The notes under the pieces were generated by a model. It was not told the origin of the DNA. It was given only the letters and a program-made list of their open reading frames with translations, and did not search any database. From positions 90,562,953-90,626,952 of the forward strand of contig NC_068986.1 in the NCBI RefSeq assembly GCF_001194135.2: DNA of 64,000 bases, read 5' to 3'. This stretch comes from Octopus bimaculoides (taxonomy: Eukaryota). Made by a program: the position numbers and the translations under genes. This document shows, one piece after another, positions 5,107-64,000 of this stretch (positions are counted from its first letter, which is position 1; every line of letters starts with the position of its first letter).

Positions 5107-5212
5107 ATGAAGGGTAAAGTTGACCTCAGTGGAATTTGAACTCAGAACGAAAAGACAGACAAAATACTGCTAAGCATTTCACCCAGCACACTAACATTTC
5201 TGCCACCTTGCT
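5107..5212 (-). mobile_element. tRNA-derived SINE family A, 5' part
   Basis: Reverse complement of the head gcagaaatgttag...ttctgagttcaaattcc seen at 44790. Confidence 0.85.
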
Positions 5213-5698
5213 GTGTTAGAATGTAAACATTCATTTTAGAAATATATTCTTATCTTAACATTATTGGGGTGTTACTTACTTCCTCACTTACTGACAATAA
5301 ATTTCATGACATTTTACCTCATAAGTTTTTTTCTACTAATTTTTGTTCAATGCGATTAACGATGCTGAATTCCTCATTCATTTTTCTATCATTTAAGCCT
5401 AAGAAAAGTATACTTTTATTTTAAAATAAAAAAAATTTATGTTAATTGAAGATGAATAGTATAAATACTGCCCACCTTTAGCCCTGATATATTTTTGATG
5501 TAACTGTTTTTCTACTGAAATAAATCTCAAACTATTTATGCCAAAGTGTAGCTGAGGAAGTGTCCTCTTTAAAACTGTTAACAGTTACCAATTTAGTTGA
5601 GAACTGAATTAGTGAAGCTGCTGCGATTGACGAAATATGGTGGACTTACGAATATATTCAACCACTACTGTGGTTGAATGATATATATATATATATAC

Positions 5699-6174: not shown

Positions 6175-6408
6175 TCTTATTTCTTTATTGCCCACAAGGG
6201 GCTAAACATAGAGGGGACAAACAAGGACAGACAAAGGGATTAAGTCGATTACATTGACTCCAGTGCGTAACTGGTACTTAATTTATCGCCCCCGAAAGGA
6301 TGAAAGGCAAAGTCGACCTCTGCGGAATTTGAACTCAGAACATAACGGCAGATGAAATACTGCTAAGCATTTCGCCCGGCGTGCTAACGTTTCTGCCAGC
6401 TCACTGCC
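6175..6408 (-). mobile_element. SINE family A, full length
   Basis: Near reverse complement of 44790-45014, including the tail gtgggcaataaagaaataag. Confidence 0.92.
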
Positions 6409-6555
6409 TTCTTTTAGTTTCTGTCTATGAAATCCACTGTCAAGGCTTTGGTCTGTTAGGGGATGTAGCAGAAGATACTTGCTCAAGATGCTGCACAATA
6501 GGAGTGAACTAGAGACCACATGGTTGGGAAGCAAGTTTCTCAACCACACAGCCAA
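6405..6555 (-). mobile_element. SINE family B, 5' part
   Basis: Minus strand ggctgtgtggttgagaaacttgcttcccaaccatgtgg...cttgagcaagt. Confidence 0.8.
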
Positions 6556-6696
6556 GTCTGTGTCATCTTCATAGTTAAAATATACAAGTTTAAATTGTTA
6601 GAAATGTCAACTGTATTTTAATTGATTTGAGAATTGTTTTAGAAGATGGTAAATATGATGAATATTTTGTTAAAGCTGTCTAATTTAATAATCTTT

Positions 6697-6890
6697 TCTA
6701 AGCACAAGGCTTGAAATTTTTGGGGTGGGAGCCAGTCGATTACGTCGAACCCAATACGCAACTGGTACTTAATTTATCGACCCTGAAAGGATGAAAGGCA
6801 AAGTCGACCTCAGCAGAATTTGAATTCAGAATAAAGACATGAAATACCGCTAAACTTTTCGCCTGGTGTGCTGTTTCTGCCAGCTTGCTG
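6697..6890 (-). mobile_element. SINE family A (ccttgtgc-tail variant)
   Basis: Head and body match 58675-58885 in reverse. Confidence 0.85.
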
Positions 6891-7257
6891 ACTTGAATTT
6901 AATAATGAGTAACTTCCAACATTGGCACAATGCTACATATCTGAGAACTGAGACAGGGAGTTAGCAACACATTTTTTTGACACATGGATCTTATAATAAT
7001 TTGGGAAAGAGGATACATAAAGGTGAGGCGCTCAGTTAAAAGAATTGATTTGGAAATAAAAGCAAAAATTCTACAAAGTATAAAGACTCAAATGGAAAAA
7101 TGTGTCGCTCAAGAAGGACTTCAGTTTGAACAATTTTCATGTTTCATATTTAGATGCTTTTATTAAATTCATTTAGTTTTTAAACATAAATAAATCTTGG
7201 AATTAAATGGTTTTGATTTAGTGTCAGGTGACTTTTGGCCAACACTGTATGTCAAAA

Positions 7258-12865: not shown

Positions 12866-12948
12866 TTAACAGCCTTTCAGTTCTTTAGAAGCCATTTCAT
12901 CCAAGATCGGTTCCTTCCAGGTTGCGTAAATGTGCTGCATCGTGCAAA
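12866..12948 (-). CDS. Candidate terminal exon of Cys-rich gene A ((V)CTMQHIYATWKEPILDEMASKELKGC*)
   Basis: Strong acceptor TTGTCTTATTTTCCAG; the phase-1 frame matches the upstream exon and runs to TAA, followed by UTR-like sequence. Confidence 0.55.
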
Positions 12949-14108: not shown

Positions 14109-14243
14109 CCAAATTTTTGTCTACACGAATCCGCGCAATAGTCTTCTTCGTAATGCTGCAGGTAAATGTTACACAATGATTCTTGAAAATACCAGGCAGT
14201 TTATCACCATCTTTCAAGCAATTTCCTTTATTATCTTTACAAA
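14109..14243 (-). CDS. Internal exon of Cys-rich gene A (CKDNKGNCLKDGDKLPGIFKNHCVTFTCSITKKTIARIRVDKNL)
   Basis: Acceptor CGTGTTTTCAG, donor G|GTAAGT, 135 nt phase1-phase1, 44 open codons with 4 Cys; similar to the exon at 58388-58507. Confidence 0.75.
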
Positions 14244-21000: not shown

Positions 21001-22489
21001 GGAATGGGTTCCCTGCTACGCTCGCGTTTGTTTATATTTAAATGAGAAGATTGTATGTAATGGCGATAGTAGTTTTGTATCTAATGGCGATAGGTAGTTT
21101 TGTATGTAATGGCGATCGAGGTGTTAGTTTCACTACACATATTTTCGATCGAGTGTGCATAACTGAAATTTTTCATGATAGTAAATTCAACCACTTCTGT
21201 ATATTCATCAATTTATAAGTACCAGGAATAGTTATAAAATCATAATTTCAACAATTCAAGTCGCATATAATACAAGAAATCTAGAAAGTGGTAAATAACT
21301 ATTCAAGAAATTATAAAAGCGAAACCTGTAGAAAACTATTTGGAATACAATTATGTTAAGGAACATTTTAACTTTTACTTACACGTTTCCAAAATCGATA
21401 TTTTGTTTTTAACGCATATTAATTTCTTACATTCATACAATGTTCTAAATATGCCAAACATATCATTACAAATGCACATTCCGTATAAGTAACATCCGTT
21501 ACATACTGTAAAAGAAATAAAAGGCAAACATTATGTCTATGCTTGGAAGGTGAATAGGCATCTATGATTAGCTTCAGGTTTTGTATACTTGAAATGCTGG
21601 TGAATTGAATTCACTCAAATATGAACTTAGATTTCTGGATGTCAGTAATGTTAAAAGGAAATGTAGAGAAAGTTCGAGAGGGATAAAATGCGCGATAGAT
21701 ATGAGAGAATGTAATGTATAAGGTATCAGGAATTTAAAACGCGAGTAAAAGGACGGAAGTAAAATGGGCAGTAAATTTAGAAAGACAGATTTAGAAAGAC
21801 ATAGATTTGGGAATATTTTTTACATTAATCTTTTTTAGAAGACTTTGCTTTGTAGTGAGTGGGCCAACGGTCTAACAAAAAAAAATTATTATAGACATGT
21901 GTAACGGCTTTAGAAGGGTTACAAAAAAGACAAAAGGGAAGGTGATCCTGTGTCTTTTCTTGGATTGGCGACGTCTGTCGCTTTAAACTAATATCCTTCT
22001 CAACGTAGTCAAGTTTGCTAAGATACCATTATACAGTTGGAATTTTAAAAATTATATTTTCGAGTACAATTACGTCTTGCAAGCTTAGAACTCCAGTGAT
22101 TTATTATTGAGTCATAGTTTAAGCTTATTTCCATTTCCTTTAAATTCAGTACAATATCTGGAGATTTTAATATATTGGAGTGGACGGATAAACGGATAAA
22201 GAAGAGAGAGAGAGAGGTGGGCGGAAGAGAGATTATGGTTCTTATGTTAGTATCGTAGTATAAAGTTTGCAAGTTCAGTGGTATAGATATTATGATAGGA
22301 GTTTAAGAACATTGAAACATACCCGCAGGTTGATATTGAATCGCAACATCAATGGGAAGGACTAGGAGTGAAAGCAAAACTTTTGAAAATGTATTATACA
22401 TCTGTAAGTAAAATAGAATAAACACACGTAAAATATATACACGCCTTTTCATTTAATAAGGATTATGCGTTGATTTATTCTTTTATTCT

Positions 22490-24037: not shown

Positions 24038-25630
24038 AGAGGTTAGTAATAAAGTCACAGTTTTGACTTGGTAAAAAAAGTTACAGGAAAAATGTTACAA
24101 TTAATTTATGGGGGCTGGTAATAAAGTCACAAGAAAAAAGTCAAAATGCCATCATATTTATATATGTTGGTATTACATGTATGAGAAAAAAAAAAAAGAT
24201 TCACGTTTTGTTCATATCTTAAGCACAGTAAGGTAATCAAACAAAAAAATTTAAGTCAGCATTTTTTTGAAAGTACATGGCATGTACAGATTGAAAACAA
24301 CTTACATAATATCGTGGCATTACATGTATATTCAACGTTTTTAATGATGATGATTAAGACAAATATTCCAGCCAACGCCACGAAGAAATTCTGTCACAGT
24401 CTTGTGGTCCCCCTGTCGAGCAACACACAAGTTGTGAAGGCGTTCTTGTAGCTGCACATAGCGTCGACGAGCTCTTCTTTGAGTGGGGTTGCCAACAGCG
24501 TCCTGCTGGATAATGGTGCTCACTGTCGCTTCTTCACGTTGAAACTATGCAATGACGCGCCAGAGTGAAGGATAGTAGTGAGGTTCAGGAATTTATTATT
24601 CCACCCTTCACAGCTGGCGTTGTTGTTCACGGCATTGTTCATGTTGTTCACAAGCGTTGTTGTTCATGGTGGCGTCCTGCACATTCTGTAGGTGAGGGGC
24701 AAACATTGGTTGAATGTGACGCATTCTCAGAGGTATCAGAGTATCACCTGACATGGCAACTGGAGCCACTAACATTAAGTACAATCGAAGTACATGAGCA
24801 ACTCCTCGGCTTCAAGTGGATCTTGTGGAATGACAGTTTTGAGGTATCTCATACTTTCATTAACGTCTTCAAGGGGCAAAAAAGCTAGAGCATCAATCAT
24901 GTCACAAAGCAAACGAAACTCAGCATTGGTATTTTAATGTGTTCCCAAACCCAGTTCCTGGATCTTACGCCAAGTAGACTGCGCAAGATGATAGAAACAA
25001 CCTTTGTTCTCTACGTCGGAGCCAAACATTGCAAGAACAGCTCTCAATACACCATCTTCAAAATCAGTCACCACGGTTTGCACATTAATAGAATAGCTTA
25101 GGTCTGCATACTTATCAACTATAGCCTGAAAGAGTTCTTCGTAGGTGGCACGAGTCTTGTTTGAAAGAAGAGCATACACTGAAGTAACAGATGTAAGACC
25201 GAAAGGGACACGAATGGCATAGATCTATTTGAAAATATTTGGAACCTAGCAAAGTTGCCATCCATATATAGAGTATGAACTCCAGCAAAGAGTCTGAGGC
25301 CATCACAAGTACCATACACTAGAATGAGGTTTGCATTTGGTCCGTTATCATAGAGTAAGAACTCTTCGGGATTAGGGCCAACTGTTATAGTATAGACAGT
25401 AGGAAGTTCATTTAGATTTTTTAGCAAACATGGTACAGGAAGAGTAGGCTGTTTGTTGCGCAGAGTTCGTGACTCATTAATTTACCATCAGTTCTGCATA
25501 CATCTTTATACAAATTGATTGACATATTAACCTTAAAACAGTGAGAATTCTACAGTTAGCCTTTCTATTAAAGAAAGACGCAGAAATAGTGCTAACGTTG
25601 CCTTCTTTAAAATTATTTTTTCCTGTGACT
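24038..25630 (-). mobile_element. Mutator-like (MULE) DNA transposon remnant
   Basis: LYMDGNF, YALLSNKTRATYEELF, VVTDFE, GCFYHLAQSTWRKIQELGL (MULE transposase domain); subterminal aaaaaagtcaca repeats at the left end and a matching piece near 25620. Confidence 0.9.
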
Positions 25631-33036: not shown

Positions 33037-33071
<35 letters not shown>

Positions 33072-33790
33072 TCACCTTCCTTCTGGATTATTCGTGGGTC
33101 AAAGGGGCATGCAACATCAACTATATAGCATATGTGGTGCACCTTGGCCACCACTACTAGGTCCGGTCTGTTATGCTCTAGCACCTGATCTGTTTGGACT
33201 GGGAAATCCCAGAGGATTTTGCTAGTCTCCGACTCTGCCATTCCCTGTGGTTTGTGTTCATACCACGTCTTGCCTCTCTCTAGCCCCCACTTTTCGCACA
33301 GTTTCCAATGTAACATTTTCGCTACCTGGACGTGTCGCCACAACTTGTATTGGTTTTGGGAAAGTCTAGGGCATTTGTTCGTGATATGGGCAATGGTTTC
33401 ATCCACTCTGTTACAGATGCGGCACAGCGGAGACACTTGCTCATTCCTCAGGTTGACCCACCACTTCGTGGCCAGAGCTTGGTCCTGCGCTGCCAGTATA
33501 GTGCTCTCGGTCTCTTTTTTTAGGGTTCCTTTCACCAGCCAACCCTACCTATTTTTTCCAGCAACTTCTGTTGGCTGTGCCTACATGGAATTGATTGCGT
33601 AGTGCCTTCTGGCGAAATTTTTCTTCATGCCCTCTTTGTACTTCTTCCTTTGTTTTCCCTTTTTTCTCTGCTTTCAATACTCCCTCGTTCCTAACTATCA
33701 CTAGCAAGGTTTCCTTACTTTGGGCTAGGTATCTCATTAAGCTCTCGAGTTCGATTTGACCTTTCCTCCTTTCTGGGTCAATAAAATAAG
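32736..33790 (-). mobile_element. R4/Dong-type non-LTR retrotransposon 3' half (CCHC + restriction-like endonuclease)
   Basis: ETESTILAAQDQ, CRIC...ETIAHITNKC, ILWDFPVQTD...HNRPDLVVV...IVDVACPFD...EKIDR. Confidence 0.92.
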
Positions 33791-34229: not shown

Positions 34230-37200
34230 AACATTCATCGCTTCCACATACCAGACAGCAGCAAAAACAAGAACTTTATTATGAACAGAACAATAGCAAA
34301 AAACCCCTCCTCAAGACATGCCCCTTCTTTGTTCGGATCAGTCGGACATGTCCTGCAGTGAGGGGAACGGCGAAAAGCCTAAATTGCTAAAAGTCGGCAG
34401 ATCTAACAAGGGAAAAAAGAATTAAAAACATACCGATATCAATACAAAAATCTAGCAGGTATGATCAAATACCACTCCAACAGCAGCCTTACAAGCACCG
34501 TTGACAACATGATCCCCATCACAACCATCACCACCACTCCTTTCACAGTCGCCATCATCACAATCACAATTCAGTTCACACATACAACTCTCAGATCGTA
34601 CATCCCAACACCAATAAAATTCAAACATCATTAACTACACAGCAATAAACACGAACAATAAAGAACTGATGGAACACATATATAACCATACAGACATCAC
34701 ACACACCGATTTTATCACACCAGCAAACAACATACCAACACACAAAATTCGTCCAAACATCACAAAACGCATACAATGTAATACAACTAAATATTCCGAA
34801 GGAGTAAGGGCTTTCAGGAGAAATATCAAAAGACTGTACAAAGAACTGATCGTGGAAGCAAACGATTGGGAGGGGACATCCTTCTCAAAGTCACCAATAA
34901 AATTACTGTAAGTGACATTTTTCTCATCTATTCTTTAATCTGATATACCCCTGCTTAAGATTGGCAGTATAAAAGTATGTGGTCTAGGATCATCTTGGAA
35001 AGAAGGTCATCTATTCAACGACCTCAGGTCACCAAGTGTAGATGTTGTAGTTATCAGTGAAACTAGACTTTCCGACCGACAAGCGTTCATGTCCATTTTC
35101 GGTGGGTATGAGATCTATTTATCTCCATATCAACCAGAACGGGGTGGGGGTGGAGCTGGAGTGTTGTTCCTGAGAGATCTGGGTCTCAAGAATGTAAGAT
35201 GGCGGTCCTGGATGTGCACAGCAATGACGAGGGTGCCCCAGACTGGTGGCTGTTTATGCTCCAACAGGAGCAGGATAACCAGATAACAGTGGTGTGGTGG
35301 ATCAGGTTGAAAGGGCTGAAGACAGACACTTTTTTCTTTGGCCAAACCATCATAAATTTTTTCAAGTTTCACCTGGAAAGGAAAATGAGGGTAGAGAGGA
35401 GAATGCTACCTCAAAGCAATTCTTTCAAAAGGTGGGTGAATGTAACGCGCAGTATGCGCCTCTAGATCGAGAGATGATGAAGAGGACAGGATACTTGCCT
35501 TAAAGGTCAGGGTGATCGTGGTTTCTGTGGGGTTTTCACGAACAACTTCTCGACTTTTATAGTGTTAGTGAGCGACTGGAACGCCGTCTAAGAGCAACGT
35601 TTGAACTGTGTGGGGCTAGTGAATAGAAGACGGGGTGGGAAAGCCTCGCAAATCTTCCCAACTGTTTGGACGGGTATCGACTAGATTTCCCGAATGTGTC
35701 AAAGTGGACCGCACCGGATCATCCAGGTCGTATCTAAACAGAGCATTTTATAGGCCAGTAGATAAGGATAGTATAAGGTTGTCAACTTTTCAAAAACGCC
35801 CACCACATAGGCTTAGATAGGCTTAGAAGGCAAGAACCCTGTTACCGGAAGCTGAACGCGTAATTACCCGGGTACCAAGGTTACAGAGACCAGATTAAAT
35901 AATTAGTGAAGCGGGCGTTGAAGTGGGCAACCCTCAATAACAAATGGTAGTTTGCCCTGAAAAGAACAATTAGAGTGGAATCAGTTAGGTTTAGTAATGC
36001 ATTAGTGATAGGAAGAAATAAAAACAGAAGGGAACTTAATTAGAGGCGCTTAGGAAAGGCGTTGCAACAGACGTGCTGGCCGCGAGATTGACCCTGGACC
36101 AATTCTTCAACGCTAAACACGAAGGTTGCATAGTCAGAGCTAAGATGCGTGTTCTAAGACAAGAAGGAAAGAAAGCCAGAGTGGTAGAGGCGCAACGTGT
36201 CAACAAAACTACAATTCGGTCTTTGGTGGACCAAAATAGATCACATTATTCCAGCCCGAGCAGATGAGTGCGGCATTTCAGCAGCGCTTCGCCCAATGAA
36301 GTCTAAGATGGACTTCATTGCCTACCACAACTTTTGGTGGGGGTAGGGGTCGGAGTGATGCGAAATGCCGATAACAGACGCAGAAATATGGGATGCGATG
36401 ATGGGTTGCACAGGGAGAAAAATCGCCTGGTTTGGATGATCTGTCCTATGAGATTTATTTTTATAAGACAGATTTGCTTGATGGCCTTTTAGCAGATATC
36501 TTCCACAACTGGCAGTAGAACGAGATAATTCCTAATTCTGTGAGTCAAAGAGTGGTGGCGCTGCCAAAAAAGGACCCAATTAAAGGGCATCAAATAGAAA
36601 ATGTTAAGCTCATAACGCTGCTGAACGCAGATTTCAAATTTGGCCGAGATGTTTGCAAAGAAGTTGGCGCTTGTCGTCGAGGAACTGATTTATGATATTC
36701 AAACATGCTCAGTCCCAAGTAAATCTATCTACGATAACCTCTACCTCATGCGAGAAATCATAGACAGGGTGGGTAAAGAAGCTAGCATGGGTTGGATCAG
36801 CCCAAAGCCTTCGATACAGTCGACCACCAATACTTGGCGGCTGTTTCCACGGCGGCCGGTTTCGGCCCCGTTTTCCGTGACTGGATTGCCGCAGTGTACA
36901 GCAACATCTGCTCGGTAGTTTGGGTAAATGGTTACTTGTTGGAACCATCCAGCACCATGCATTCAGAGCATCAAGAGTGTCTGCTTTCGTCTCTTCTGTG
37001 TGTCCTGGCTCTAGAACCACTATTGCAGAAACTGGGGGCGTTGAGAGGTATTCCATGCGAACTAGGATGTTGGAGAATAGTGTCGGCATACACAGACGAC
37101 GAGGTCACTGTCATAGTGTCGAACATCAAGTACATAGACCTGGTCGGCACTGCTCCGAAAAATACGAGGCAGTGACAGGAGCAAAAGTTAACCAAAAAAT

Positions 37201-52800: not shown

Positions 52801-53103
52801 TTTTATCCTGATTTATCAGAAAATTCGAGTGGTATTGATAGTAATTAGCCTTTTGAACGCAATTTCAAACATGCATTTGAAACTAAAACCTACTTCTTAC
52901 ACATACATAAATCATAATATTCAGAATTGTTTCTTCCATTAAAAAAAAAAAACCCCAGAAATCCAGATGACTATTGAAAATTCAGAAGGCTTCTAGAAAA
53001 ACCAGTTAGCAACAGGAAATTTCCATGGGCTGAGAGAAACAATGGAATTCCCTGAACTTTTACTCAATCTCACATTAATAACTGATAATATTAAGCTCTA
53101 TAC

Positions 53104-53325
53104 AAGGCGGTAAGCTGGCAGAATTGTTAGCACGCCAGGAAAAATCATTAGCGGCATCACGTCCGTCTTTACGTTCTGAGTTCAAATTACGTTGACTTTG
53201 TCTTTCATCCCTTTCGAGGTCGATAAAATAAGTACCAGTTGAACACTGGGATCGATGTAATCAGCTGATACCCCTTCCCTACGTTTGCTGGCCTTGTACC
53301 AGTACCAATATTTGAAATAAATATT
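53104..53325 (+). mobile_element. SINE family A
   Basis: ggcggtaagctggcagaattgttagcacgcc...gagttcaaatt...ggccttgtacc. Confidence 0.88.
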
Positions 53326-53809
53326 AAGCCTGGTACGAGACACGTTTTACATAGGATAGAGCCAGACTGCCGAGCTTGGACGATTCAAGTCGTCCCATAG
53401 ACAATTCACAAGAATTACACGACGAGCCAATAGAACCCGCCACTGACAATTGACAGAGACATCTCTCATACTCAATTTTTATCTTTTATATTTTACTCTG
53501 TCAACCAAATTACAGAGAACTGCTGGATAACTATTGAATTTCTGACAACCATATTAAATTATTTATGTAATTAAAACTTTATGGAAACATAAATAATAAT
53601 TTATGGAAACATAAATAATAAATATTTCACTACCTGCTCAAAGTTTTCTGAAAAGATTACAAGCAACAATGTATTTCTTAAAAAAACAAACAGTGGAAAT
53701 GAAAATATGAAGGTTCTGATGATTGAATAAATACCATTTGACAATTATAACATGCGTTTAATTTATTTTTTAATGTTATGTTCTATTTAGAAATATTTTA
53801 CATGAAAGT

Positions 53810-53990
53810 AAGGCGACGAGCTGGCAGGATTGCTAGCACGTTGGGCAAGATGCTTAGCGGTATTTCGCTCGTCTTTACGTTCTGAGTTCAAATTTCGTCA
53901 AGGTCGACTTTGCCTTTCATCCTTTCGGGGTCGCTGAAATAAGTACTAGTTGAGCGCTGGCTTCGATGTAATCGACTCATCCTCACCTCC
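53810..53990 (+). mobile_element. SINE family A
   Basis: ggcgacgagctggcaggattgctagcacg...gagttcaaatttc. Confidence 0.88.
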
Positions 53991-54073
53991 CAAATAATAC
54001 TTATAACAATAATTATTATTTTTATTAAGACACCGAGCTCGCAGAATCGTTAGAGCAGGAATCGGGGAAGATA

Positions 54074-54750
54074 AGATTGTACTGTAATGCAAAGAAAAGA
54101 GAGCTGCAAGTATTCAACCACGAAATGCCTGTGTCAGTGAAAGTAAGAGACGGCAAGTTGCTGAAGGTAGTTGAAAATTTGAAATACCTTGGTGCGTGGA
54201 CACAAAGTACTGAAAAAGACATCGTAGCAAGGAAAGCTCTTGCCTGGGGCGCATGCCATGAATTGAGAAAGGTATGGAGTTCAAAGTTAGCAAGGAAATT
54301 GAAAGTGGGGTTGTTTCTGGCAACAGTGGAGTCTGTTCTTCTTTACAGGGCTAAAACATGGACGCTCACTAAAGTATTGAAGAAGCAGTTGGACGGTTGT
54401 TGTATGAGGATGCTTAGAACGGCACTCAATATCTCCTGGAAGAGTCATACAACAAACGTTGATTTATACCAGGGGCTAACAAAAGTAACATTGAAAATAC
54501 AGCATAGAAGAATGAGGCTAGCTGGACACTGCATCAGACATACCAATGAAATTGCTAAGAAGCTAGTGCTCTGGCAACCAACAGAAGGAAGAACCAAGAG
54601 AGGAAGGAGGAAGACGACCTATATCGACAAGTTACTGGAGGATACTGGTATGTAAGGGGTACAGGAGCTGAGGACCATTATGGAAAATCGAGATGAATGG
54701 GGGAAATGTGTAAAAACAGTCTTGGGGTGTCATATGGAACGACCTAGATA
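54074..54750 (+). mobile_element. RTE-clade LINE 3' end (RT C-terminal region)
   Basis: LKYLG, LFLATVESVLLYRAKTWTLT, RRMRLAGHCIRH, RGRRKTTYID; 192-aa open frame 54077-54655. Confidence 0.88.
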
Positions 54751-56458: not shown

Positions 56459-57152
56459 NNNNNNNNNNNNNNNNNNNNNNNNNNNNNNNNNNNNNNNNNN
56501 NNNNNNNNNNNNNNNNNNNNNNNNNNNNNNNNNNNNNNNNNNNNNNNNNNNNNNNNNNNNNNNNNNNNNNNNNNNNNNNNNNNNNNNNNNNNNNNNNNNN
56601 NNNNNNNNNNNNNNNNNNNNNNNNNNNNNNNNNNNNNNNNNNNNNNNNNNNNNNNNNNNNNNNNNNNNNNNNNNNNNNNNNNNNNNNNNNNNNNNNNNNN
56701 NNNNNNNNNNNNNNNNNNNNNNNNNNNNNNNNNNNNNNNNNNNNNNNNNNNNNNNNNNNNNNNNATATATATATATATATATATATAGTCAATTTAAACA
56801 TGAACAAACAAGAAAAAACACGAAAGAAAGCACGAAAAAACAACGCGAGGACGTGGAATAAGTACAGTGTTATTGGACGCTCAGGAAAGGAAAGGAAAGA
56901 AAGAGGATATGTATGTATGTATATGTATAGAAAAAGGAATAGTTATACACGAAAAGTGCCAAGTTTCTGAATCGAAAGGTTTATCAATAATATTTTTAAA
57001 ATAGCTTCCAGACTAGGTATTTTTCTGGAAATAACTTTATTCCACCAATTAAGGATCTCTTAGAAAGGGTCAAGCGTACTGCAAATCTACTCTTCTGAAT
57101 GATCAATTAAAAGTGAGATATTTAACATGTGTATATTTTATTTTACTTACAG

Positions 57153-57210
57153 ATGCATGCATTTTCGAAAGTTTTGTTTTTATTAGTCCTTCCCATTGTT
57201 GTGAATTCAG
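57153..57210 (+). CDS. Signal-peptide exon of Cys-rich gene B (MHAFSKVLFLLVLPIVVNS)
   Basis: Acceptor TTTTACTTACAG directly before ATG, 19 codons with a hydrophobic core, donor CAG|GTATGT in phase 1. Confidence 0.75.
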
Positions 57211-57578
57211 GTATGTTTCAATATTCTTAGACAATTAAATTTTATCCGAAACACTGAACATTGCTGATTTTATATGACAGAAGAATGAAGACATAAACTC
57301 TAGCTTCTTCACATTCCACTCTGATATTTAAAAGTCTGCAGATATGGCACTGAATTTTAAAGAGGTCGAAAAAACGTTGATTCAATAAAAGAAATAATTC
57401 AAATTTCAGCAGACTTCTTTTGCCCTAACAAAACATAATTATGTACCTATATATAGACTCGCATCCTGACATGCTTGACTGCATTGAAAAGAAAATTACT
57501 CAAAAGTTAGATACGATCTTCGCAAAGACACCGATTCATTTTTACGTTTAGTCCTCTGTATTTTCTTCCAGACCGAGT

Positions 57579-57950
57579 GGAGGCGCAATGGCCCAGTGGT
57601 TAGGGCAGCGGACTCGCGGTCATAGGATCGCGGTTCCGATTCCCAGACCGGGCGTTGTGAGTGTTTATAGAGCGAAAACACCTAAAGCTCCACGAGGCTC
57701 CGGCAGGGGATGGTGGCGAACCCTGCTGTACTCTTTCACCACAACTTTCTCTTACTTCCTGTTTCTGTTGTGCCTGTAATTCAAAGGGTCAGCCTTGTCA
57801 CACTGTGTCTCGCTGAATATCCCCGAGAACTACGTTAAGGGTACACGTGTCTGTGGAGTGCTCAGCCACTTGCACGTTAATTTCACGAGCAGGCTGTTCC
57901 GTTGATCGGATCAACTGGAACCCTCGACGTCGTAAGCGACAGAGTGCCAA
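57579..57950 (+). mobile_element. SINE family C, full length, intronic
   Basis: tRNA-like head tggcccagtggttagg...ggttccgattccc, CpG-rich body. Confidence 0.88.
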
Positions 57951-58387
57951 CATTTCTTCCAGACCTATTATGCACACCTTACAAAACGAAAAGATCGTCA
58001 ATAGGTCGTTAACCAAATATAAAACAGTGTCGTATCAATTTATGTTCGTAAATTGTATCTGCAAAAATTATTCCTCATAGTTCTATGTTCTATATTCAGT
58101 TCTATACTAATTTTCAGCTCCTTTTTTCTTGTTTGAAATTCTACACAGTTTTATATATAATTTTTTTCGATATTGCAGTCACGTATTATATCCCTCCAAA
58201 CAATTTTCTTCGTTACTGCCTGGACATTATTTACTAAAATTCAATGTTTAATTTAATATTCGACTAAACTAGAATTATTGAAATCTCAAGTAAAAGAAAC
58301 ATACACTAAATACAGACACCAGCTCAACCCCTCAAACAAAAAAAATAGAGTCTCACTATTTTCTTTATAACTATATTTCTGTTGCAG

Positions 58388-58507
58388 AATGTAACGGATG
58401 TCCCTTAGACGGAAAATGCATTTGTGGTGGGAGTGGTATATTTAGATCAATGTATGACTGTAAGAAAATAACTTGTCGTAGGAAAACGATCAAGATTCGG
58501 GAAATCC
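58388..58507 (+). CDS. Second exon of Cys-rich gene B ((E)CNGCPLDGKCICGGSGIFRSMYDCKKITCRRKTIKIREI)
   Basis: Acceptor TATTTCTGTTGCAG, donor C|GTAAGT, 120 nt phase1-phase1, in frame with the signal exon; 6 Cys. Confidence 0.78.
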
Positions 58508-58674
58508 GTAAGTAAGAACAAAAATATCTTTTACTTAAAGTTTATATTCTAAATTTTATGCTGTAAGCAAAATATTTCACTTGAGGAAATATAAGCTCTT
58601 AACTGAGATTATTTTTCTCACTACAATGTTAGCACTCATTCTAGGGTTCATGTTGTTAATATTCATAAGTAATA

Positions 58675-58885
58675 AAGCGGCGAGCTGGCAGAAACGTTAG
58701 CACGTCGGGCGAAATACTTTGCGGTATTTCGTCTGTCTTTACGTTCTGAGTTCAAATTCCACCGAGGTCAACTTTGCCTTTCATCCTTACGGGGTCGATA
58801 AATTAAGTACCAGTTGCATACTGGAACTAATTGATTGGTCCCCTCCCACAAAATTTCGGGCCTTGTGCCTAGAATAGAATAGAAA
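58675..58885 (+). mobile_element. SINE family A, intronic
   Basis: gcggcgagctggcagaaacgttagcacg...gggccttgtgcc. Confidence 0.92.
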
Positions 58886-59734
58886 AGAATATTCATAAGT
58901 AATCCCTTTAAACTATTAAGTTGTCACGACAGCTCATGCACCTACCTGCTTGCCTGCCTACCGAAAAACAAAACAACCTACCTGCCTACCTACCAACATA
59001 GATACATTCATACACACACACACACACACACATGTGTATGTATGTATATACATATATTTATATGATGAGCTTCTTTCAGTTTCTCTCTACCAAATCCACT
59101 CACAAAGTTTTGAACTTCCTTCTATTTCCTTTTTTATTTTCGTCATTAACTAATGGTGGTCACTTCTACTTAGAAATCATATCTTCCTCCGCGAACTCCA
59201 GTTCAACAAGTAGTATTTGTTCTATTTACAGGAGATATCTAGTGAATGGGATCGTTCTCTCTTAACATGATCTGCGACTGAAAGTTAATAATTCAACTTT
59301 ATATTTTCTTTTAAGTATTAGCATCTAATTTTTTGCAAATGAGATATATATGATTCTTATGATTTTATCATTAGTATTGCTATTCTTAGTTTTAGCATTT
59401 AGTTTTTATTTAATCTTTATTAATAACATTTGCTTTATTTGCTTTATTATTAACATTGGACAAAAATTTTTTAAAATTTTCTGTTGCATGAGATTTTTTT
59501 ACTGATTCTAACTGTCTTTTATTGTGCTAATTTCAAATCTGCAATCGGTTTTGCTCTCCATACTCTAGTTTTCTTTCAATTTGAAGATCAACTTTTTATA
59601 CATTGAAAGTTAAATTTGACATACTGTGATACACATATCCTACTGTGCTTTTTTTTAGATCTTATGATCGACAACCGTACAGCGCTATATAAAGCTTCAC
59701 TGAATGTATATATATACATACACACACATATATG

Positions 59735-59945
59735 TGTGCCTTTGTGCCTGAAAACAGGCGTTGGTTTGTTTACGCCCCTGTAAATTAGTGGTTCGGTAAA
59801 ACTGACCGATAGAATATATACGAAGCTTTAAATGATAAAAAATAAGTACTGGAGTCGATTCGCTTCACTAAAATTCTTTAAAGCGGTGACCCTGCATGGC
59901 CGTAGTTTAACGATTGAAATAAGTAACGGATAAAAGATAAAAGAT
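59735..59945 (+). mobile_element. SINE family B 3' part
   Basis: ttggtttgtttacgccc...gtggttcggtaaaa...gtcgattcg...gcatggccg. Confidence 0.75.
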
Positions 59946-60479
59946 GAAAGATATGTTAGCATGTATATGTAAAAATGCACAAAACCCGAAAATCCTGTTT
60001 AATTATTTCCCTTAAATAATAAATCTGAAATCAAAAGTAAACGAAACGATGTATCTTCACAAGGATTGAAATTAATCATGATTAAATAATTTTTCCACTT
60101 TAATTTTCTTTCTCATTTTTCATTTTTCATTTTATTTCTTTTATTTAATTCTTGTTTATTTTATAAATGCATATTTTAATGTCTGTTAGCTTTTATATGG
60201 TGAAATCTTTGAAATGATCTGTGGATTTACTTTTAATTTTACCTTTGTTTTTGCTATTTGTCTTATTGTATTATGAGATTGTCTTATAATATACGCCTAT
60301 TTTGTAGTTGTATTTCTGTTATGTTAATTTTAAAAGAGATGCTTATGGTGTTCACTTTTGGACTAGGTTGTATTTTGGAACTAATTGTTCCTCAATGCAC
60401 ATTATAATATTTGGTGCAAATCGCCTAAAGAAATATCTGAAAAGCTGTAAAAATGCCGTCAACAACACTAATAAAAGTT

Positions 60480-61870
60480 TGTAACGATCCCATGAGGAAA
60501 AGAGATCTGAAAAAGAAGTCAATCCCTAAAGCTTTCTTTAATTTTGCCAAAAAATGACCTCAGTATATTACAAGATAGGGCCCCTTCTCCAAAAGGATGG
60601 CTCCCTCACAGGAAGCCCAAGGAGGATAAAAGTGAAATACTGAACGAACAGTTCAAAAGTGTTTTCTCTACCCCGTTAGGATACAGGCAAGGGAACAAAT
60701 CAGTAGAGTTCTTTGCCACTACATCTGTAGCCAGGAAGACAGCAAAAATTGATTACATCAACACCAAAAATGTAATACTGACCCAAGATGAGACAGACGC
60801 AAATTTAGTTACTGGCCCTGATAGATTCCCAGCAATCCTTCTCAAATAATGCAAACAGGCCCCTGCTACAGCTTCTTTTTCAGAACTTTCTTGCAAGTGG
60901 TAAATTCCCAAGGAAAAGCCTTTGATAAAATCGAACATGCCTCAAGTTGCGTAATTTCGGCAAAATCAGAAAAATTGAAGAGTGGCTACACGACTTTTTA
61001 AAAGATAAAAGCCTGGTAAGTGGCAAATGGAGCTACTTCCAAGGAAACACAAATAGTGAATGGTGGGCTGAGGACAATAATATGCAGTTTAATACTAGTA
61101 TATTCCAAGACCTGCGCTATCAGCACACGGAGCTGAATGAAATGTAGACAGGATACACTGGCCTAGGAGGGATTGCAACCCCTGAATCAAAATCAGTGTG
61201 CAACCTGGGAATTGACACGAATATGATGCATCTTTTCAGGTGCATATTACTAAGTTGGATCTGTAGAGCTTTCAGAACGAGAGAACGGGAAACAATGACG
61301 GTCCTCTGGAGGACATTTGTCCCCAACCGCTTAGACTACTGCTCCCAACTATGGTCACCACACAGTGTAAAATTAGCAGTGGGACTCGAAGCAATGCAAC
61401 GACGCTTTACAAAGAAGATCATCTTAATGTGACAGGTTAGCTATTGAGAAAGGTTGAAGAAGTTAAGACTCTACGGCCTAGAACGAAGGCAGGAAAGATA
61501 TGAAACGACATACATCTGGAAAATCCTAGAGGGACTTGTACAAAACTTTGGCATTGAAAGTTACACAAACAGCAGAACGGGGAACCACTACACAGTGACA
61601 AAGATCCCAACATCTCCATAAAAATATAGGACCAGATACTGCAACAGTTTAGGTTTCAAGAGTCTACAGCTCTTCCTTATCTTCCCCCAAAAGACTGAGG
61701 GACTTACATAGTGTGGATGTAGGCATCTTCAAAACAAAACATGGCCTCCTTCTGTCAGGAGTTCCAGATGAACCTACATCGCGGCAGAAAATGCAAATGG
61801 GGGCAACAATATCAAACTCCCTTATTCATCAAATACCACATGTTAAAGATTCCAAAGTAATAGAAGTGTA
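60480..61870 (+). mobile_element. CR1-clade LINE ORF2 remnant with internal deletions
   Basis: SEILNEQFKSVF, GPDRFPAILLK, KAFDKIEH, WICRAFRTR, LDYCSQLWSPH, EAMQRRFTK, LERRQERY. Confidence 0.9.
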
Positions 61871-63058
61871 GCAAAACTAACGGTGATGCTCCAGCATGAC
61901 CGCAAATCTATAACTGAAACTACTAAAAGACTAAAAGAATAAGGGAGATCGGGGAAAGTGCATACATGCATGTGTTTGTATGTCAGCAAACAGGTATATA
62001 TATATATATATATATATATATNNNNNNNNNNNNNNNNNNNNNNNNNNNNNNNNNNNNNNNNNNNNNNNNNNNNNNNNNNNNNNNNNNNNNNNNNNNNNNN
62101 NNNNNNNNNNNNNNNNNNNNNNNNNNNNNNNNNNNNNNNNNNNNNNNNNNNNNNNNNNNNNNNNNNNNNNNNNNNNNNNNNNNNNNNNNNNNNNNNNNNN
62201 NNNNNNNNNNNNNNNNNNNNNNNNNNNNNNNNNNNNNNNNNNNNNNNNNNNNNNNNNNNNNNNNNNNNNNNNNNNNNNNNNNNNNNNNNNNNNNNNNNNN
62301 NNNNNNNNNNNNNNNNNNNNNNNNNNNNNNNNNNNNNNNNNNNNNNNNNNNNNNNNNNNNNNNNNNNNNNNNNNNNNNNNNNNNNNNNNNNNNNNNNNNN
62401 NNNNNNNNNNNNNNNNNNNNNNNNNNNNNNNNNNNNNNNNNNNNNNNNNNNNNNNNNNNNNNNNNNNNNNNNNNNNNNNNNNNNNNNNNNNNNNNNNNNN
62501 NNNNNNNNNNNNNNNNNNNNNNNNNNNNNNNNNNNNNNNNNNNNNNNNNNNNNNNNNNNNNNNNNNNNNNNNNNNNNNNNNNNNNNNNNNNNNNNNNNNN
62601 NNNNNNNNNNNNNNNNNNNNNNNNNNNNNNNNNNNNNNNNNNNNNNNNNNNNNNNNNNNNNNNNNNNNNNNNNNNNNNNNNNNNNNNNNNNNNNNNNNNN
62701 NNNNNNNNNNNNNNNNNNNNNNNNNNNNNNNNNNNNNNNNNNNNNNNNNNNNNNNNNNNNNNNNNNNNNNNNNNNNNNNNNNNNNNNNNNNNNNNNNNNN
62801 NNNNNNNNNNNNNNNNNNNNNNNNNNNNNNNNNNNNNNNNNNNNNNNNNNNNNNNNNNNNNNNNNNNNNNNNNNNNNNNNNNNNNNNNNNNNNNNNNNNN
62901 NNNNNNNNNNNNNNNNNNNNNNNNNNNNNNNNGTTAATACTTCATTTAGAGAATTAACATTGCTTGTTTTCACCTTTTCAATATCAGTGAAGAATGTCAC
63001 TGGAAAAGAAGATATAAGATTTGCCAGGTTTTTCTCTCTCACCAAGGTCATCAGCTGT

Positions 63059-63103
63059 CGAACGCCGACGAAGGGAAATAACCCTGAAATCCGGATACGT
63101 TCG
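63059..63103 (+). ncRNA. Minimal type-I hammerhead ribozyme motif (U4C core variant)
   Basis: CGAACG-CCGACGA-AGGG-AAATAA-CCCT-GAAA-TCCGGA-T-A-CGTTCG: perfect 6-bp stem I, 4-bp stem II, palindromic stem III. Confidence 0.7.
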
Positions 63104-63369
63104 TGCTGCTGGTCGTGGTGAGAGGGATAACTCCCTTGGCAAACAGGACACAGTCGTGTGTCGATAAGCCAGCTGGAGGAGATGTCCTCCTGGGGCTAAA
63201 AGCAACAGTAACATCCACCCCTAGGGGTCAGCCACACTTAAGTGGCAATATACTACACTTTATATATATATATATATATACATATACATACTATATATAC
63301 ATATATATATGTACATAAATATAGATATACTTATATATATACATACATATATATGTACATACATATATC

Positions 63370-63723
63370 CTCACAGGCACCCATCATCGACCCTATCATA
63401 TCACTGACCCCTTCACCTGCACTTCTAGCAACGTCATTTACTGCATCTCCTGCTCTCTCTGTCCTTCTCTGTACATCGGTCAAACGGGATACCGCTTGGC
63501 TGACCGGTTCGCGGAACACTTCCGAGACATCAGACTCGACAACGCTACTCCAGTCTCGCGCCATTTCTGCTCTACCGGTTATTCTTCACAACATCTGTCT
63601 GTTTTCGGATTGTCCTTGCACAGGGGCCATCCAGACTCTCGTCTTCACCGTGGACAGGAATTAATCTTCTCTCTTCGCTCTTTTGTGCCACATGGGCTCA
63701 ACTTCCCTCCCCTCTTCATCTAA
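63370..63723 (+). mobile_element. Penelope-like element GIY-YIG endonuclease C-terminus (open frame)
   Basis: FTCTSSNVIYCISCSLCPSLYIGQTGYRLADRFAEH...PVSRHF...GLN, followed by a pyrimidine-rich 3' region. Confidence 0.93.
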
Positions 63724-63743
63724 CTCCCCCATCTCCTCTCTTC

Positions 63744-63812
63744 CTCTCACACCTACTTCCTCTCACACCTACTTCCTCTCACACCTACTTCCTCTCACAC
63801 CTACTTCCTCTC
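63744..63812 (+). repeat. 16-bp tandem repeat (cctctcacacctactt) x4
   Basis: Direct reading. Confidence 0.92.
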
Positions 63813-64000
63813 TTCACTCCCACCCACCTGCCCTCTCTTGCTCTAACACCTGCTTCCACTCTTCACATCTACTCACCTTCTCCCTTCCACCCTCTACCTT
63901 CATCGTACCCCTCCATCGTTACCCCACGCCTACACATCCCAACTCTACCATCCCTATACATTCCACATTCTACTCCCACATACCCCGCTACTACCCCCAC

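Follow-up and report, generated by a model that had tools for sequence, protein, structure and literature searches.

A pair of coding exons on the forward strand

The window analysed here is a 64-kb stretch of AT-rich, gap-ridden DNA, identical to the corresponding part of O. bimaculoides GCA_001194135.2 CM046606.1, in which coordinate x is chromosome position 90,562,952 + x. An earlier note had placed a spliced gene for a small secreted cysteine-rich protein (gene B) near its end. Direct reading of the DNA confirmed the two exons that it proposed, with their strong splice sites and an in-phase join across a phase-1 intron (Table 1). Exon 1 encodes a signal peptide, MHAFSKVLFLLVLPIVVNS, and the first base of the following codon; exon 2 encodes ECNGCPLDGKCICGGSGIFRSMYDCKKITCRRKTIKIREI, and splicing the two gives MHAFSKVLFLLVLPIVVNSECNGCPLDGKCICGGSGIFRSMYDCKKITCRRKTIKIREI, 59 residues with one base, C, left over. 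The cysteine spacing, C-x2-C-x5-C-x-C-x11-C-x4-C, is also as claimed, and the exon-2 part has a net charge of +5 and a pI of 9.1. The analysis supports the picture of a spliced segment, invisible to an open reading frame listing, that carries a signal peptide followed by a Cys-rich secreted domain.

The description of exon 1 needs one amendment. A 3' splice acceptor directly abuts the ATG of gene B, and the same ending, ...ttacttacag/ATG, is common to all five family genes compared (gene B, its paralogue gene A, P0002, P0010, and P0007). This shared acceptor implies a 5'-UTR exon upstream, so that exon 1 of gene B is indeed the first coding exon but not the first exon of the transcript. The implied 5'-UTR exon of gene B was not located.

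Scans of the window single out both exons. In a crude scan of the forward strand, gene B exon 1 was the sole exon combining an ATG, a hydrophobic core, and a donor. Only two consensus-spliced open exons with at least five non-microsatellite cysteines were found on both strands of the 64 kb, namely gene B exon 2 and its gene A paralogue at 21505-21383 on the reverse strand. In tblastn of gene B exon 2 against the window, the gene A exon was matched at E 2e-11, and an nhmmer profile of exon 2 built from the 4 annotated relatives matched 58389-58502 at E 1.2e-17. Judged by these sequence comparisons, the gene B exon pair is genuine, and more than chance. Candidate small RNAs were rejected: the sub-threshold Rfam matches to mir-297, mir-3149, mir-1277, and SCARNA7 at 58961-59142 are artefacts of CA/TA microsatellites.

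Table 1. Positions of the features of gene B and gene A in the window, and dimensions of the family genes.
Feature	Position	Strand	Description
Splice acceptor abutting gene B ATG	57123..57152	+	tatattttattttacttacag/ATG; conserved in the family
Gene B coding exon 1	57153-57210	+	58 nt; ATG at 57153; donor CAG/gtatgt; phase 1; direct read
Gene B intron 1	57211..58387	+	1177 nt; phase 1
Gene B coding exon 2	58388-58507	+	120 nt; phase 1 to 1; ttgcag/AA ... TCC/gtaagtaa
Gene B intron 2 donor	58508..58515	+	gtaagtaa; same in gene A, P0002, and P0007; gtaagtga in P0010
Assembly gap	62022..62932		911 N; 3.5-4.4 kb after exon 2, within the family intron-2 length range
Gene A (LOC106869794)	24320-12866	-	5' exon and four coding exons; annotated; manual splice = XP_052824911
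Gene A isoform X1 5' exon, coding end	24306..24320	-	MPRYY; 1.9 kb upstream, spliced to the acceptor before the ATG
Gene A coding exon 1	22323..22401	-	MYNTFSKVLLSLLVLPIDVAIQYQPA; paralogue of gene B exon 1
Gene A coding exon 2	21383..21505	-	VCNGCYLYGMCICNDMFGIFRTLYECKKLICVKNKISILET; paralogue of gene B exon 2
Gene A coding exon 3	14109..14243	-	FCKDNKGNCLKDGDKLPGIFKNHCVTFTCSITKKTIARIRVDKNL; 4-Cys second module; located using P0002; a guide to the expected form of the missing gene B exon 3
Gene A coding exon 4	12866..12948	-	VCTMQHIYATWKEPILDEMASKELKGC then stop; located using P0002
Family exon 2			123 nt (four complete genes)
Family exon 3			132-135 nt (four complete genes)
Family exon 4			68-83 nt (four complete genes)
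Family intron 1			0.8-1.9 kb (four complete genes)
Family intron 2			3.0-7.1 kb, 2991-7139 nt (four complete genes)
Family intron 3			1.2-2.8 kb (four complete genes)

Gene A, a complete paralogue in the same window

Gene A and gene B are arranged head-to-head, 35 kb apart. Spliced by hand, gene A yields a protein of 139 aa that is identical to XP_052824911 (P0008, LOC106869794 isoform X2; 100% identity and coverage), while isoform X1 corresponds to X2 plus the MPRYY of the 5' exon. The flanks of its signal-peptide exon, attttacttacag/ATG and gtatgtttcaat, are the same as those of gene B. At the DNA level, blastn aligns the two genes in two blocks, 57105-57549 with 22453-21932 (E about 1e-28 to 8e-28) and 58048-58554 with 21823-21338 (E 1e-31), each at 62-63% identity. 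The alignment thus begins approximately 50 nt ahead of the ATG, spans intron 1, and ends approximately 45 nt past exon 2, beyond which the matches between the two genes are interspersed repeats only. A paralogue that shares both exons and the acceptor before the ATG, and whose intron 1 can be aligned, argues strongly that gene B did not arise by chance. Identities of exons versus introns from global alignment were left out of the argument, since shuffled controls also reached 68%, which makes such values uninformative.

Intron 1 of gene B carries a GC-richer SINE-like insertion of approximately 370 nt (57577-57947, forward strand) that is absent from intron 1 of gene A. Copies that are 91-93% identical occur in the O. 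sinensis loci L003 and L004, with a partial copy in L001; ARAGORN and Rfam call no tRNA in this element or around the gene B locus. Two other short interspersed repeats occur in several copies in the window (58650-58886, 53100-53297, 53802-53995, 6684-6922, 6234-6414, and 5107-5218; also 59745-59980). Over 84-246 nt the copies are 72-87% identical, and one lies some 140 nt downstream of exon 2 of gene B. Sub-threshold Pfam matches to RVT_1, zf-RVT, and DUF6451 mark decayed retroelement fragments at 36792-37172 (+), 33059-33535 (-), and 54077-54652 (+). The segment 60540-61900 (+), in what would be intron 2 of gene B, contains many stops, has no Pfam match, and resembles a LINE by translation only. 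Finally, an open frame at 63367-63680 (+) has a GIY-YIG-like motif that falls short of the Pfam cut-off (E 9e-4) and recalls the endonuclease of Penelope-like elements; a CT-rich tandem repeat comes after it at 63740-63800.

An Octopus-only family of 12-cysteine proteins

A HMMER search of 1.84 billion representatives with the 59-aa gene B peptide gave real matches in Octopus only, all from O. bimaculoides: P0002 (5.7e-8), P0003 (1.1e-7), and P0005 (2.3e-6). Two further matches, the bacterial repeat proteins P0001 and P0004, owe their scores to summation over repeats and were discarded as spurious. Searching 5.8 billion clusters with a family profile returned six clusters, again all from Octopus. 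The O. bimaculoides members are LOC106869794 (XP_052824910-13), LOC106869804 (XP_052824915-17), and the old model LOC106869796; the cluster search added the UniProt fragments A0A0L8HM59 and A0A0L8HMF6 and O. sinensis LOC118763828, and O. sinensis LOC118763715 was grouped in the cluster of LOC106869804. All these relatives are present in protein collections from genome annotation only. A word-indexed protein search with the gene B peptide gave no candidates; no database protein shares words with this peptide, which indicates that three rounds of annotation left gene B unmodelled.

The earlier note did not recognise the family, and the databases bear this out. With the 59-aa peptide and the four full-length relatives, Pfam gave nothing above threshold (the matches to CFEM, Ral, and zf-CW are noise), a sequence profile search of the PDB with the family gave no match, and searches of the literature with LOC, XP, and UniProt identifiers and with peptide strings retrieved no papers; a keyword search yielded analogies only. 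Based on these sequence searches, the family is one that has no detectable relatives outside Octopus and that is already in the databases as "uncharacterized protein".

We rebuilt four complete annotated genes from their loci, two from O. bimaculoides (including gene A) and two from O. sinensis. All four have four coding exons separated by phase-1 introns only, and encode precursors of 131-139 aa with mature parts of 107-113 aa and 12 cysteines, distributed 6 + 4 + 2 by exon. Exon 1 supplies the signal peptide, exon 2 a 6-Cys module with the pattern C-x2-C-x5-C-x-C-x12-C-x4-C and invariant G, R, and Y (CNGC...C.C...G..R..Y.C....C), exon 3 a module with four Cys ([YF]CKDNxGNC...CVxFxC), and exon 4 a 2-Cys tail ([VI]-C-x-[LM]-x-H-[IV]-Y-x-x-W ... 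C-stop).

In O. bimaculoides, the members form a cluster at about 90.57-90.75 Mb of CM046606.1; one of them, P0002, lies about 119 kb further along the same chromosome. The octopus annotation of this cluster is unreliable, being incomplete or chimeric. The old LOC106869796 model (P0003, XP_014771142) consists of most of P0011, followed by exon-2 sequence of the P0005 type and then by residues foreign to the family, and from this composition it seems to fuse parts of two members of the family; P0005, with 71 aa, ends after exon 2. In O. sinensis, a family exon-4-like sequence, VCLLDHVYSQWQRSITQTMAEC, lies at 28339-28253 (-) of L003 (CM016864.1, about 19.137 Mb), where no gene is called, and is convergent with LOC118763828. 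It probably represents another unannotated O. sinensis paralogue and could be part of the orthologue of gene B.

Gene B as a member of the family

Gene B shares with the family the acceptor abutting the ATG, the phase-1 signal-peptide exon, the symmetric 1-1 exon 2, and the location in the same chromosomal cluster. Its exon 2 is 47-56% identical to those of the relatives, all six cysteines match those of the complete relatives, and the seven family-invariant columns (four Cys, G, R, and Y) are kept. There are, however, clear differences. Exon 2 is 120 rather than 123 nt long and one codon shorter, giving C-x11-C instead of C-x12-C; at otherwise constant positions, Y is replaced by P after the second Cys and N by G after CxC; and the last base of the exon is C, compared to T in the rest of the family. 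The gene product had been called cationic, which holds for the visible module of gene B (net +5) but does not extend to the modules of its relatives (-2 to +2).

Since all four complete relatives go on to encode four more Cys in exon 3 and two in exon 4, the visible part of gene B is most likely the first half of a fifth member of the family and not a peptide of 43 aa. Our favoured interpretation, which we consider probable, is that the two coding exons of gene B form the 5' half of a paralogue that has escaped annotation, part of a tandem cluster restricted to Octopus; that it is also an intact member of the family has a somewhat better than even chance. On the forward strand from 58508 to 64000, where 911 nt are N, tblastn, nhmmer, and hmmsearch located neither exon 3 nor exon 4 of the family; in the window as a whole, these searches matched the exons of gene A only. 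The stretch after gene B exon 2 amounts to 5.5 kb, compared to an intron 2 of up to 7.1 kb in the relatives. Given the range of intron-2 lengths in the family and the position of the assembly gap, exons 3 and 4 of gene B may lie in the gap or past 64000; they may also have been lost. Comparison of the would-be intron 2 of gene B with those of the four relatives yielded SINE and microsatellite matches only, and no unique homology.

Sequence constraint

Pairwise dN/dS values for exon 2 of gene B versus P0002, P0007, and P0010 are 0.26-0.39, similar to the 0.33-0.65 obtained for gene A versus the same three genes, which speaks for an intact gene B. Lineage-specific substitutions number 18 in gene B versus 7 in gene A, i.e., 2.5 times more, and the exon-2 changes on the gene B lineage comprise 6 synonymous and 12 non-synonymous ones, a ratio that is indistinguishable from neutrality over few sites. 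Gene B and gene A differ at 45% of exon-2 residues, while the six Cys and the G, R, and Y are kept; by our own calculation, the chance of keeping these nine positions if changes were random is about 0.005. The only indel of gene B is of three bases, in frame.

The orthologues P0002 and P0007 (O. bimaculoides and O. sinensis, from L001 and L004, respectively) have a dN/dS of 0.59 over the mature region, and their exons 2 differ by 7 non-synonymous and 0 synonymous changes, counts that hint at diversifying selection acting on module 1, though they are too few to support a statistical test. Taken at the level of these sequences, the family is evolving fast.

Alternative explanations for gene B

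The alternative that carries most weight is that gene B is a partial duplicate or a decaying pseudogene, of which no more than the ATG exon, intron 1, and exon 2 were duplicated or have persisted, and which does not make a functional full-length protein. We consider this unlikely, although several observations are in line with it: similarity to gene A breaks off some 45 nt beyond exon 2, searches after 58507 turned up neither exon 3 nor exon 4 of the family, the gene is unannotated, its substitutions outnumber those of gene A at a ratio of synonymous to non-synonymous changes compatible with neutrality, and both the replacements at otherwise constant positions and the one-codon deletion are unique to gene B. 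If gene B were a pseudogene, its intact frame would reflect short length and limited age. However, no stop interrupts the 59 codons, and the start codon and the three splice sites (donor, acceptor, and second donor) conform to consensus. The retention of the six Cys and of G, R, and Y despite the divergence of exon 2 from gene A would be improbable under random change, and the sole indel is a multiple of three. An intron 2 as long as those of the relatives could put exon 3 outside the readable sequence. Intron 2 cannot be aligned among the relatives outside repeats, so that the loss of homology between gene A and gene B in this region is to be expected.

A different outcome, close to that proposed in the earlier note, is a short cationic peptide with 6 Cys that stands on its own (about 43-55 aa when mature) and ends in a short third exon at 59229 (RDI, then stop), 59660 (HLMIDN..), or 60368 (RCILELIVPQCTL, then stop). 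Acceptor-like sites do exist at these three positions, a truncated paralogue could recruit a cryptic terminal exon, and the gene B module is unusually basic. Yet the three continuations have no likeness to family exon 3, the sites sit amid SINE, microsatellite, and decayed LINE sequence, and they have no support from conservation; every complete relative, moreover, has its 12 Cys spread over three exons, with a mature protein of about 107-113 aa. The short peptide is not supported as the expected product, and we give it only a slim chance. Even less credible is that the Cys exon is an LRRNT-type cap, or another N-terminal module of a large receptor that continues outside the window. As is typical of extracellular modules that have been shuffled, the exon has a CP...CxC motif and a symmetric 1-1 phase, but there is no Pfam LRRNT match even at E<=10, and the homologous exons in four genes lead to two short Cys exons and a stop, giving proteins of 131-139 aa that lack LRRs; we regard the LRRNT assignment as refuted. 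The last alternative, a coincidence of open frames and splice-like sites, might come to mind in AT-rich DNA with its many GT and AG dinucleotides, but it is refuted by the profile and paralogue matches and by the uniqueness of both exons in the scans, and has next to no probability.

Predicted fold and similarities to known systems

AlphaFold2 models of gene A and P0002 were generated from a shallow alignment of 5 sequences. The gene A model has a pLDDT of 70 (about 80 over residues 1-85) and the P0002 model a pLDDT of 79, and both have the same all-beta two-module fold with the strands grouped by exon. In Foldseek searches of the PDB with both models, pairs of fibronectin type I (FnI) modules rank first (3ejh, 3gxe, 3cal, and 2cg6), with E values of 0.013-0.75 (none <=0.001), TM scores normalised to the query of 0.36-0.47, and 8-18% identity. 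FnI and VWC modules have a 4-Cys pattern per module, with 1-3 and 2-4 pairing. Like FnI pairs, the models are elongated, with two small beta-sheet modules rich in disulfides placed in tandem, one per exon; they differ in their cysteines, 6 + 4 + 2 as compared to 4 per FnI module. VWF C domains are a looser match to the models than the FnI pairs. Since the family has no Pfam match to fn1 or VWC and no PDB sequence match, the model-based likeness to FnI pairs is weak and non-significant, albeit reproducible, and suggests resemblance only, not membership. With hhalign, no internal duplication was detectable between module 1 and module 2.

Similarity to other cysteine-rich peptides is one of kind. 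With 107-113 aa and 12 Cys, the family falls outside the definition of short 3-disulfide toxins or antimicrobial peptides of the knottin or defensin type (mature length below approximately 50 aa and exactly 6 Cys). The resemblance of gene B to an LRRNT cap (Pfam PF01462) is a superficial one, a CP-x-C-x-C motif after the signal peptide that has no profile match. A parallel is offered by lineage-restricted secreted cysteine-rich peptides of other molluscs such as MgCRP-I of Mytilus (PMC4558851), reported to be a taxonomically restricted multigene family of short 6-Cys peptides whose members combine a signal peptide and a fixed Cys scaffold with variable loops, and which standard annotation had overlooked. 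The Octopus family is similar in kind and has no sequence relationship to MgCRP-I; it differs in size (about 110 aa with 12 Cys), in its Cys array, and in taxon.

Possible function and significance

On our favoured interpretation of gene B as a family member, exons 3 and 4 would be placed 3-7 kb after 58507, in the N gap or past the window end. The precursor would enter the secretory pathway, and its signal peptide would be cut near the boundary between VNS and E, as predicted from the sequence; the -3/-1 rule for signal-peptide cleavage is well established. The mature protein of about 110 residues would fold into two small disulfide-locked beta-sheet modules, with three disulfides in module 1 and six in the whole protein, and may bind a partner in the extracellular space. 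A role at an external interface, whether in defence, towards prey, or in signalling between individuals, would fit the rapid sequence turnover of the cluster seen in the comparisons above. That the family is an octopus innovation for venom or saliva, skin defence, or chemical communication, with gene B as a basic, divergent functional member or a truncated copy, is a speculative proposal that we consider improbable; were it true, a truncated gene B would now yield a stand-alone cationic 6-Cys peptide.

Taken alone, gene B, possibly incomplete, is an incremental finding. It adds an unannotated locus to a small and uncharacterised cluster that encodes secreted 12-Cys proteins in Octopus only. 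It is usually from fast-evolving secreted proteins confined to one lineage that venoms, mucosal defences, and pheromones are drawn, which makes the cluster a reasonable target for tissue-expression and proteomic work.
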